A stretch of 64,000 nt of DNA, from positions 558,001 to 622,000 of the forward strand of contig NIVC01000106.1 in NCBI GenBank assembly GCA_002269645.1, read 5' to 3'. A program made the translations under genes and the position numbers. Positions 48,501 to 51,500 of this stretch are shown here, piece by piece (position 1 is the first letter of the stretch; each line of letters begins with the position of its first letter). The notes under the pieces are model-generated. The model had not been told where the DNA came from. It was given only the letters and a program-made list of their open reading frames with translations, and searched no databases. The stretch comes from Macrostomum lignano. Taxonomy: Eukaryota.

Positions 48501-51500
48501 AGATGAAGGGAGAGAGATAAGATAAAGGAGATGAAGAGAGATGAGATGAAGAAAGATATGAGATAAAGAAGTTGGGGAGAGAGATGAGATAAAAGGAGAG
48601 AGAGAAGATAAAGGGAATAGAGAGAGATGAGATGAAGGGAGAGAGACATAAAATGAAGGGAAGAGATGAGATGAGATGAAGGAATGGAGAGAAATGAGAT
48701 AAAAAGAAATAGATGAGATGACGGGGTGAGATGAGATGAAGAGGAGGGAGCGAGATTAGATGAAGGGAGCGTTGAGATGAACGAATGGAGAGAAATAAAA
48801 TGAAAGGGATGGGGGAGATGAGACGAAGAAGGAGAGATGAGAAAGGAAGAGATGAGATGAAGGACGAGAGATAAGATGAATAAGATTCTTCACTCCACCC
48901 GTCCGCAGGCTACGACTACTGCGCCCGCGGTCACAAGTGCTCTCCCAACGCTGACTGCGTCAATCTGCACAATCGATACGATTGCGTCTGTCGACCCGGT
49001 TACCGTGGCAACGGACTAAACTGTGTCGACATTGACGAATGCTCCACGGAGAACAGGTGTGGCAATCACAGCGTTTGCGTGAACACGATTGGCAGCTTCA
49101 GGTGCGACTGCCTGCCCGGCTTCACAAAGGACACCGAGTACTCTTGCAGAGGTGAGGCCCCGACCAGCCTGAAACCGACTCTGCCGAATTCTGAAGCTAC
49201 TCTACCCTACCGGAAGCTAATCTACCTCACCTGCAGCTAGCCTACCCTACCGAAAGCTAATCTACCTCACGTGAAACTAACCTACCCTATCTAAAGCTAA
49301 TCTACCCTACCTGAACCTAATCTACCCTACCTGAAGCTAACCTACCCTACCTGAAGCTGATCTACCCCTACCTGAACCTAATCTATCCTACCTGATGCTA
49401 AACTATACTACCTGAAGCTAATCTACTCTACCTGAAGCTAATCTACCCTACCTGAAGCTAATATACCTCACGCGAAGCTAACCTACCCGACCTAAAGCTA
49501 ATCTATCCTACCTGAACCTAATCTACCCTACCTGAAGCTAACCTACCCTACCTGAAGCTGATCTACCCCTACCTGAACCTAATCTATCCTACCTGAACCT
49601 AATCTACCCTACCTGAAACTAATTCACCCTACCTAAAGCTAATTTCCCCTATCTGTAGCTAATCTACTCTACCTGAAGATAATCTACTCTACCTGAAGCT
49701 AATCTACTCTACATGAAGCTAATCTACTCTACCTGAAGCTAATCTACTCTACGTGAAGCTAATCTACTCTACCTGAAGCTAATCTACTCTACCTGAAGCT
49801 AATCTACCCTACCTGAAGCTAATCTACCCTACCTAAAGCTAATCTACGCTACCTGAAGCCACTCTAACCTATCTAAAACTACCTTAGCACATAGCCAACG
49901 TGTCCCTATTCAAAGCATAGCAACCCAATATCAGAAGTGTTTACAAATTCCAATTTAGACAAGAATCTTGCATTGACCTATTTGTATGAAAACTTTTCAG
50001 TATAAACAACATTTTACCATTAACAAGAAATAAAAACATTGCAGCAACCAGAAATATAAGTCAACACGTGACACTCAAAGTACAGAAAAACCTACCCTTG
50101 TAGTTGTTTACTGCCAGAAACTTCATTTACAAAAATTGGTCTTTCCAAAATATGCACACATTTCTATTTTTATAGACACAGACGAATGCAGCGAGACCAG
50201 CTTGAACCGGTGCTCCACGCACGCCACCTGCTCTAACAGCCTTGGATCGCATTCGTGCACCTGTTTACCTGGTTACTATGGAGATGGATTCAATTGTTTG
50301 CGTAAGTTCTCCTTCGTTCTATAGGTAGGTTAGATTAGCTTCAGGTAGTGTAGATTAGCTTTAGGTTGAGTAGATTAGCGTCAGGTAGGGTAGATTAGCT
50401 TTAGGTAGGGTAGATCAGCTTCAGGTAGGGTAGATTAGCTTCAGGTAGTGTAGTTTAGCTTTAGGTAGAGTAGATTAGCTTCAGGTAGGGTAGATTAGCT
50501 TCAGGTAGGGTAGATTAGCTTCAGGTAGGGTATGATTAGCTTCAGGTAGTGTAGTTTAGCTTTAGGTAGAGTAGATTAGCTTCAGGTAGGGTAGATCAGC
50601 TTCAGGTAGGGTAGATTAGCTTCAGGTACCGGTAGTGTAGTTTAGCTTTAGGTAGAGTAGATTAGCTTCAGGTAGGGTAGATTAGCTTTAGGTAGGGTAG
50701 ATCAGCTTCAGGTAGGGTAGATTAGCTTCAGGTAGTGTAGTTTAGCTTTAGGTAGAGTAGATTAGCTTCAGGTAGGGTAGATCAGCTTCAGGTAGGGTAG
50801 ATTAGCTTCAGGTACCGGTAGTGTAGTTTAGCTTTAGGTAGAGTAGATTAGCTTCAGGTAGGGTAGATTAGCTTCAGGTAGAGTAGATTAGCTTCAGGTA
50901 GAGTAGATTAGCTTCAGGTAGAGTAGATTAGTTTCAGGTATGGTAGCTTAACTTCAGGTAGGGTAGATTAGCTTCAGGTAGGGTAGATTAGCCTAATGCA
51001 TAAATATTTATAGCATAATTCTGATTTTGCACTTTCAACAGCAATCTGCCAGCCGTCCTGTCTGAACGGAGGCAGCTGTCTCAGGCCCGGGGTTTGCACC
51101 TGCCCCACCGGTTTTCACGGTCGCCGCTGCGAGCTGGGTAGGGCCAACTGATAGTGCTTTTAACTATGCGCCGATATGTATTGAAAGCGATATTGTAAAG
51201 TGCCGAAATACGCATATGGAGATGAATATGTACAGAATTTATTAACCCACGAAGACTTTTGACAGACGTGACTAGAAGGTGACACACAGGTGACACACAG
51301 GTGACACACAGGTGACACACAGGTGACACACCACTTATGTTTAACAGGTGGTAACGCACAGGTGAAATACAATGTCTACTCGTAGATAGTTGCTACAAAA
51401 TCTAACAGAATGTCAAAAACACTGAGGTAACGATCATCAAACTTAGTCACTATCCTAATAGTTGATTGCCAAATCTTTCTTTCCAGACATTGACGAATGC

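Follow-up and report, generated by a model that had tools for sequence, protein, structure and literature searches.

Inverted minisatellite arrays around the EGF3 exon of a NELL gene in the flatworm Macrostomum lignano

Whether two satellite arrays of opposite orientation can change the splicing of the exon between them, or are simply tolerated there, is the question raised by a gene of the flatworm Macrostomum lignano. The DNA analyzed here, referred to as the window, is a stretch of 64,000 nucleotides of GenBank assembly GCA_002269645.1 (contig NIVC01000106.1, positions 558,001 to 622,000 of the forward strand), and all coordinates are those of the window unless another contig is named. It holds Mlig033531.g1, a gene of the NELL type, in which introns 10 and 11 each contain a long array of the same 20-bp unit, in opposite orientations, around an exon for a single EGF module. 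The structure is real and is present in both copies of the gene, and the predicted folding makes consequences for splicing, circular RNA (circRNA) or double-stranded RNA (dsRNA) plausible. Among the explanations weighed below, we lean somewhat towards the one in which the pair is a tolerated by-product of repeat turnover, with exon 11 mainly included and at most minor effects on splicing, and not a selected switch.

Array A (49191..49871, plus strand) consists of 34 units of CTGAAGCTAATCTACCCTAC in intron 10 and begins 40 nt past the exon 10 donor, and array B (50323..50997, minus strand) holds about 33 copies of that 20-bp unit in intron 11, beginning 22 nt past the exon 11 donor and stopping 44 nt before the exon 12 acceptor. 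Tandem Repeats Finder (TRF) delimited a 20-bp array at 49191-49871, with 34.0 copies and the consensus CTGAAGCTAATCTACCCTAC, and a second at 50323-50992, with 32.8 copies and the consensus AGGTAGGGTAGATTAGCTTC, which is the exact reverse complement of CTGAAGCTAATCTACCCTAC in cyclic register; unit-by-unit parsing gave the same column consensus for the two arrays. When the 64 kb were searched with the unit pattern at three mismatches or fewer, 58 matches were found against 0.01 expected, lying on the plus strand only at 49191-49852 and on the minus strand only at 50325-50997, with no unit at this threshold elsewhere in the window. Self-blastn aligned array A with the minus strand of array B at 84% identity over 686 bp, and 169 inverted pairs were found, so that complementarity is present in both flanking introns. 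The arrays of opposite orientation around exon 11 that a preliminary description had noticed from the letters alone were therefore confirmed by TRF, by the strand-split unit matches and by self-blastn. The same description held that the arrays share rare unit variants, and such variants do exist in both (GCTGATCTACC twice in array A and four times in array B; GCTAAACTA once in A and five to six times in B), but the sharing is not statistically persuasive (hypergeometric p of about 0.26 for recurrent variants), and the variant with G at unit position 9 (G9) is missing from both arrays of the second gene copy. Rfam gave no match on the window, and a scan of the satellite and exon 11 against metagenome and prokaryotic genome collections gave 0 matches, as expected for a flatworm.

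The gene that carries the arrays is identified by its protein. PAA90632.1, the product of Mlig033531.g1 in assembly Mlig_3_7, mapped to the window at 100% identity as 18 coding exons at 36547-58896, and the genomic record holding the DNA of this gene (L001; GCA_002269645.1, contig NIVC01000106.1) showed 0 mismatches to the window over 37,454 nt. A query of concatenated exons led to a Macrostomum lignano protein cluster that includes PAA90632.1 (982 aa) and PAA71179.1 (Mlig033531.g2), and the database source of this cluster names the protein NELL2. Alignment of the Mlig033531.g1 protein to human NELL2 was single and colinear over residues 56-742 (E = 7e-94), with the domains in the order known from NELL proteins (LamG/TSPN, coiled coil, VWC, six EGF modules, VWC), and Pfam recognized Laminin_G, EGF_CA and VWC. 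Judged by this similarity, Mlig033531.g1 is a NELL orthologue, and the colinear NELL2 alignment agrees with the earlier naming of the gene. Past the part aligning with human NELL2, the flatworm protein also has a poly-Q run (QQQQQQ) in a C-terminal VWC region and a Ser/Thr-rich, acidic tail of about 110 residues, both encoded by exons 17-18 (58079-58896).

Exon 10 (48909..49151, plus strand) encodes EGF1 and EGF2, its translation being 100% identical to residues 434-514 of PAA90632.1, and ends at the donor GAG/GTGAGG at 49151/49152. Exon 11 (50176..50301, plus strand), the eleventh coding exon of the annotated gene, is 126 nt long, of phase 1-1 and bordered by AG and GT, with TGC/GTAAGT as its donor. 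Its translation (DTDEC...FNCL, with 6 Cys) forms one module of the calcium-binding EGF type, and was aligned to NELL2 EGF3 in 6pog_B and 9pwq_B. Exon 12 (51042..51137, plus strand, 96 nt) encodes EGF4, which is not calcium-binding. Joining exon 10 to exon 12 keeps the frame (...EYSCR-A-ICQPSC...). Readthrough past the exon 11 donor would end at a stop codon at 50319, within intron 11. The number, position, length, phase, single EGF and in-frame skipping of exon 11 had all been described correctly from the DNA, and the module can now be named as NELL EGF3. The unique 3' part of intron 10 (49872..50175, plus strand, 304 nt) contains a polypyrimidine tract and the acceptor TTTCTATTTTTATAG/AC and is 98% identical to the second gene copy. 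The unique 3' tail of intron 11 (50998..51041, plus strand) contains a branch-point-like CTGAT and the acceptor CACTTTCAACAG/CA and equals the second copy except for a 3-nt gap.

RNA folding was carried out for Mlig033531.g1 on the region 49152-51041, for which the minimum free energy (MFE) is -1055 kcal/mol, compared with -204 kcal/mol when array B is replaced by its reverse complement and a mean of -468 kcal/mol for mononucleotide shuffles; for the inner 901 nt, z = -27 against dinucleotide shuffles. The MFE structure favours cross-intron over within-intron pairing, with 60 helices that comprise 596 A-B pairs, 24 being G-U, against 4 A-A pairs and 0 B-B pairs, and nine of the A-B helices run for at least 20 bp uninterrupted, the longest for 35 bp. 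The predicted pre-mRNA hairpin (49196..50992, plus strand) has a stem from 49196:50992 to 49871:50326, and its 454-nt loop would hold exon 11 and both its splice sites, that is, the intron 10 acceptor region with the unique 3' part of that intron, the exon itself and its donor. Outside the stem lie 44 nt from the exon 10 donor to the stem and 49 nt, including the unique tail of intron 11, from the stem to the exon 12 acceptor, or about 93 single-stranded nt. Since the arms are tandem arrays, alternative pairing registers are many, with 85-93% complementarity over about 200 nt. The several-hundred-bp pre-mRNA duplex that had been suggested for this locus, with folding as one way of checking it, is thus predicted in silico. 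Hairpins of such geometry are known to favour exon looping-out and back-splicing, as with Alu and MIR pairs.

In addition to their complementarity, the arrays contain motifs that resemble splicing signals. Array A is G-poor (9.7% G) and has 23 branch-point-like CTAAT motifs on the sense strand. The sense strand of array B has 24 CAGGTA motifs, 14 of which are CAGGTAGGG pseudo-donors, and CAGGTAGGG matches the donor consensus at 7 of 9 positions, equal to the real exon 10 donor. It is conceivable that A-B pairing would mask these decoy splice sites. Intronic minisatellites with splice-site-like motifs are also found in amphioxus, where the so-called mirages duplicate an exon-intron boundary, contain AG/GT motifs and leave normal splicing undisturbed (PMC3087553). 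Arrays A and B differ from mirages in having no similarity to the neighbouring boundaries, and the donor-like CAG/GTAGGG of the array B units differs from the exon 11 donor TGC/GTAAGT. A closer resemblance to mirages is seen elsewhere in the gene, where a 15-bp array of TGAGTGACAGGGGAT (58379-58499) starts at the exon 17 donor (CGG/GTGAGTGAC) and its units repeat the donor part TGAGTGAC, with 8 units in Mlig033531.g1 and about 40 in the second gene copy.

That second copy, Mlig033531.g2, repeats the layout on contig NIVC01001182.1 (L002), with exon 10 at 15977-16219, exon 11 at 17983-18108 and exon 12 at 19169-19264 of that record. Its array A2 (16259-17677, plus strand) has 70.9 units and its array B2 (18148-19121, minus strand) has 49 units, and no array unit was found in L002 outside the orthologous position. 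The arrays meet unique sequence at the same points in the two copies, except that g2 has about 18 nt more of it ahead of array B, and the copies differ by about 2% in unique intron sequence. Folding of the g2 region gave an MFE of -1719 kcal/mol and 919 A-B pairs. The two copies show that the inverted pair predates the g1/g2 split. Duplicated blocks are common in this assembly, with about 180 Mb at 95% identity or more, as the sequenced line has extra chromosomes (PMC5730564). The g1 and g2 copies may be alleles, homeologues or copies on a duplicated chromosome.

The second copy also bears on the suspicion that one array was mis-oriented in the assembly or that the locus is a fold-back chimera. 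Long inverted tandem repeats are difficult to assemble, and both contigs come from one PacBio-based assembly; nevertheless, mis-orientation is very unlikely because the two contigs share the orientation despite different array lengths and unit compositions. Moreover, the arrays are not mirror images, as a block of units with C-to-T at position 16 lies at the 3' end of array A and at the 5' end of the reverse complement of array B. The spacer is unique and the exon in it is correctly oriented, exons 12-18 carry on colinearly, and there are no Ns, all of which makes an artefact of assembly hardly credible.

The use of exon 11 can be read from the gene models. The GenBank annotation of the assembly is a genome-guided RNA-seq transcriptome (PMC5730564), and the inclusion of exon 11 is therefore transcript-based; the models of both gene copies contain the exon, so that constitutive skipping is excluded. 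Two older UniProt models from the ML2 assembly depart from this picture at 50176-51626 and 57178-57367 (models P0161 and P0282). In A0A1I8IIH0, exon 10 is joined to exon 13 with the loss of 222 nt in frame, and the model then runs into intron 13; such a junction would not be explained by the A-B hairpin alone. A0A1I8I9K2 takes an internal GT (50269..50277, plus strand, CTG/GTTACT) as donor, by which the exon would end at 50271 and drop its last 30 nt together with the sixth Cys, and also has a frameshifted stretch of 26 residues in exon 16. The frameshift suggests assembly indels and work-arounds by the predictor, and the internal donor is probably a gene-model artefact. Because A0A1I8I9K2 carries this frameshifted stretch, both ML2 models are treated as weak evidence. 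No model in the protein cluster skips exon 11 alone.

How the pair came about is best seen against the other repeats of the gene. Tandem repeats make up 41% of the window and 15% of the M. lignano genome (PMC5730564), and nearly every NELL intron contains at least one minisatellite array, with various families represented. In the gene region (36000-60000), 17 of the 19 arrays have a g2 counterpart in the same place and orientation, with copy-number changes from g1 to g2 of up to about 5-fold (e.g., 8 to 40 units and 17.5 to 85.5 units). As nearly all arrays of the gene persist in both copies, the persistence of arrays A and B needs no special explanation. The mean A-B unit identity is 0.865 and 0.876 within a locus versus 0.861 and 0.882 between loci, and this equality gives no sign of exchange between the arrays or of selection on their complementarity. 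The unit comparison of g1 and g2 likewise showed neither sequence exchange nor compensatory co-variation between A and B, and co-evolving complementarity, which was considered as a candidate, left no signal. Arrays A1 and A2 have 12 unit types in common and many A-specific variants that are not in B, and the overlap of A with B is limited to the consensus unit and two or three frequent variants. Recent exchange as the source of the shared variants was consequently rejected, given that the overlap is not significant and that the A-specific variants were kept in A1 and A2 and are absent from B. On these sequence comparisons, the A-B complementarity bears no sign of selection beyond common descent.

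Two origins by a single event were also considered. Foldback (FB-type) transposons have long terminal inverted repeats composed of short tandem repeats, and the present pair resembles them in having two long inverted arms less than 2 kb apart, each a tandem array of a unit of about 20 bp. Unlike such elements, the M. lignano pair has no target-site duplication or shared flank and no further copies in the window or in L002, and its interior is the conserved host exon for NELL EGF3, because of which it cannot be a single inserted element. At the A/B flanks, no homology beyond the arrays, no terminal inverted repeat and no target-site duplication is visible, and the flank alignments score 15-18 versus a shuffle mean of 15 and maximum of 24. 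A single foldback element was rejected on this combination of interior exon and bare flanks. A mirror-image palindrome or an inversion was rejected as well, since the order of variants is unmirrored and an inversion would need exon 11 to have been antisense earlier. Array pairs of one family occur both ways in the window, direct (10719/19967/23405 and 7770/8625) and inverted (13226/32277). Most likely, one minisatellite spread locally, in inverted orientation, to the other side of the exon, and the two arrays then turned over independently.

The tolerated by-product is favoured because exon 11 is in the transcript-based models, nearly all arrays of the gene persist, and the arms show no co-evolution. 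In this process, array A, being G-poor and lacking a partner in its own intron, would stay unfolded until transcription has advanced by about 450 nt and array B has been made. The two arrays would then close up, in one of many possible registers that differ by 20 nt, as an imperfect duplex about 600 bp long. Exon 11 and both its splice sites would be looped out within 454 nt, and the exon 10 donor and the exon 12 acceptor would be separated by about 93 nt of single strand. Exon 11 would still be in the main product, and at most a minority of transcripts would give rise to an in-frame exon-11-skipped mRNA without EGF3, possibly together with exon 11 as a circle or lariat and with dsRNA left over in the nucleus. 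Duplex formation in vivo and any splicing effect are what we infer from the folding model. Several points weigh against this account. Helicases, heterogeneous nuclear ribonucleoproteins (hnRNPs) or fast co-transcriptional splicing could block the duplex in vivo, and a g1/g2 divergence of about 2% is too small to separate neutral evolution from selection. Typical single-exon circRNAs are larger than the 126 nt that a circle of exon 11 would have. In addition, the ML2 models differ exactly around exon 11, and may be artefacts or may reflect real, more extensive alternative splicing.

The first of these points leads to the explanation that the pair has no consequence, in that co-transcriptional splicing, RNA-binding proteins or helicases would keep the duplex from forming meaningfully in vivo, and exon 11 would be constitutive, with no circRNA, editing or small interfering RNA (siRNA). 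The annotated coding sequences of both copies, RNA-seq-guided as they are, all contain the exon, its polypyrimidine tract is strong and its donor is GTAAGT, and the lack of any sign of selection on the complementarity is equally consistent with this explanation. However, the predicted stability is extreme, about 850 kcal/mol of it being due to A-B pairing, and nothing in intron 10 competes with array B for pairing with array A (4 A-A pairs). Moreover, much shorter inverted repeats are known to be enough for looping or back-splicing in other animals, as in the MIR-driven ciRS-7 (PMC7371899). A wholly inert pair is accordingly regarded as possible but unlikely. If nothing happens at this locus, it would mean that a 600-bp intronic hairpin is tolerable around a constitutive exon.

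At the other extreme, the arrays might be a selected, tunable switch, a satellite zipper that regulates EGF3 inclusion to give a functionally distinct NELL isoform, with array length setting its strength. The layout in both gene copies, the symmetric exon with its in-frame skip and the variation of older gene models at exon 11 could be taken in this sense, and EGF3 makes up one half of the site by which vertebrate NELLs bind Robo3. A natural human NELL-1 isoform lacking one calcium-binding EGF has distinct activity (PMC13144030), and since it does, a flatworm NELL without EGF3 would probably behave differently too; by analogy with the vertebrate proteins, in which EGF2 and EGF3 form the Robo3-binding surface, it would probably differ in function. 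The human isoform, NELL-1-deltaE, is comparable in its in-frame loss of one calcium-binding EGF with altered activity, but it is a vertebrate isoform for which no role of intronic repeats has been reported, and the EGF lost is probably not EGF3, and may be EGF5, to judge by the 47-residue size difference. The layout in both copies loses much of its weight, as g1 and g2 differ by only about 2% and the remaining arrays of the gene have nearly all persisted too. There is no compensatory A-B co-variation, the 1.5- to 2-fold difference in array lengths between the copies shows that length is not constrained, and the protein cluster is without an exon-11-only skipped model. In addition, the Robo-contact residues were reported to be conserved in chordate but not in protostome NELLs (PMC7083938). 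A selected switch is therefore considered improbable.

A third alternative is that the intronic duplex is diced as a source of endogenous siRNAs (endo-siRNAs), with the small RNAs acting on the NELL copies or on other satellite-bearing transcripts. The long duplex, with its nine uninterrupted helices of at least 20 bp and a longest helix of 35 bp, and the location of both arms within one annotated transcription unit would suit such a function. On the other hand, the satellite was not found elsewhere in about 100 kb of M. lignano sequence, no target is known, and the duplex would be intronic and nuclear; this alternative is, in our view, slightly more doubtful still than the switch. Drosophila hairpin RNA (hpRNA) loci for endo-siRNAs, some of which are made of inverted tandem repeats, produce dedicated non-coding transcripts whose targets are known and whose siRNAs have been mapped. 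The NELL pair is similar to them in forming, in silico, a long intramolecular duplex of inverted repeated units in one transcript, and differs in that a protein-coding gene carries the arms, one in each of the introns around a conserved exon.

The nearest known counterparts of the pair are inverted Alu repeats (IRAlu) of primates and similar inverted-repeat pairs, such as the MIR pairs at ciRS-7 (PMC7371899; reviewed in PMC11263572). As in these, complementary sequence is present in both introns around an exon, cross-intron pairing is favoured with no within-intron partner, and looping-out of the exon and a dsRNA substrate are predicted, the exon being skippable in frame. In contrast, the M. 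lignano arms are 20-bp minisatellite arrays, not dispersed transposons, and are register-degenerate, allowing many 20-nt shifts. The predicted stem, at about 600 bp, is roughly twice that of an Alu pair, and its length shifts quickly with copy number (34/33 versus 71/49 units in the two gene copies). The preliminary description had called such a role for simple satellites little described. This stands for the repeat class, as no paper on inverted repeats built from satellites on the two sides of an exon, or on circRNAs of Macrostomum, was found in the open-access literature; the mechanism itself is textbook, and for Drosophila, satellites have been described before as enriched in the introns that flank circRNAs (PMC10136798). 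The novelty lies in the class of repeat, which tolerates shifts of register and is labile in length; the looping-out mechanism is already standard.

If the duplex forms and affects splicing, the locus would be a clean natural case of tandem arrays in the role of mammalian Alu or MIR pairs. It would also have a property absent from Alu and MIR pairs, in that stem length would follow array copy number, which is already 1.5- to 2-fold apart between the gene copies. A broader speculation would be that inverted minisatellite arrays form an RNA zipper, tunable in length and tolerant of register, which sets EGF3 inclusion in flatworm NELL and maybe also yields circRNA or siRNAs. In genomes rich in tandem repeats, such as that of M. 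lignano, satellites and not transposons would then perhaps be the main source of exon-looping complementarity, with copy-number change leading to heritable splicing variation; we give this wider view a low chance of being right. The idea that the duplex affects splicing is directly testable, as transgenesis is feasible in M. lignano and public RNA-seq and small-RNA data exist.

Several other repeats of the window were recorded. A dispersed repeat of about 350 bp and about 80% identity lies at 41266-41595 (plus strand) and 43209-43563 (minus strand), with a third copy at 5432-5748 (plus strand). It forms a second inverted pair in the NELL gene, around exons 6 (41780-41862, 83 nt) and 7 (42900-43031, 132 nt), with a predicted duplex of about -551 kcal/mol; skipping of both exons together would remove 215 nt and shift the frame. 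Upstream of NELL, inverted satellites of one family at 13226-14146 and 32277-33582, with 16-bp and 15-bp units (AGCACCAAGGGGCGCC and TGGTGCTAAAGCCCC), are 77% identical on the minus strand and about 18 kb apart, with at least one other annotated gene between them (RMD1-like, about 29071-31543). Three direct arrays of a 28-31-bp unit (…GGATCTGGGAGGCTGGCCCAGC…) at 10719-11416, 19967-20972 and 23405-24463 share 85-90% identity within 14 kb. ARAGORN reported a tRNA-like sequence with undetermined anticodon at 54807-54881 (minus strand), which adjoins a dispersed repeat at 54619-54806 with two other copies at 9886-10032 and 18286-18520; together they suggest a tRNA-derived short interspersed nuclear element (SINE). 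A 56-bp satellite at 15-3787 comprises 68 copies at 92% identity, with a short inverted repeat inside each of them (ATCCCATT…AATGGGAT).

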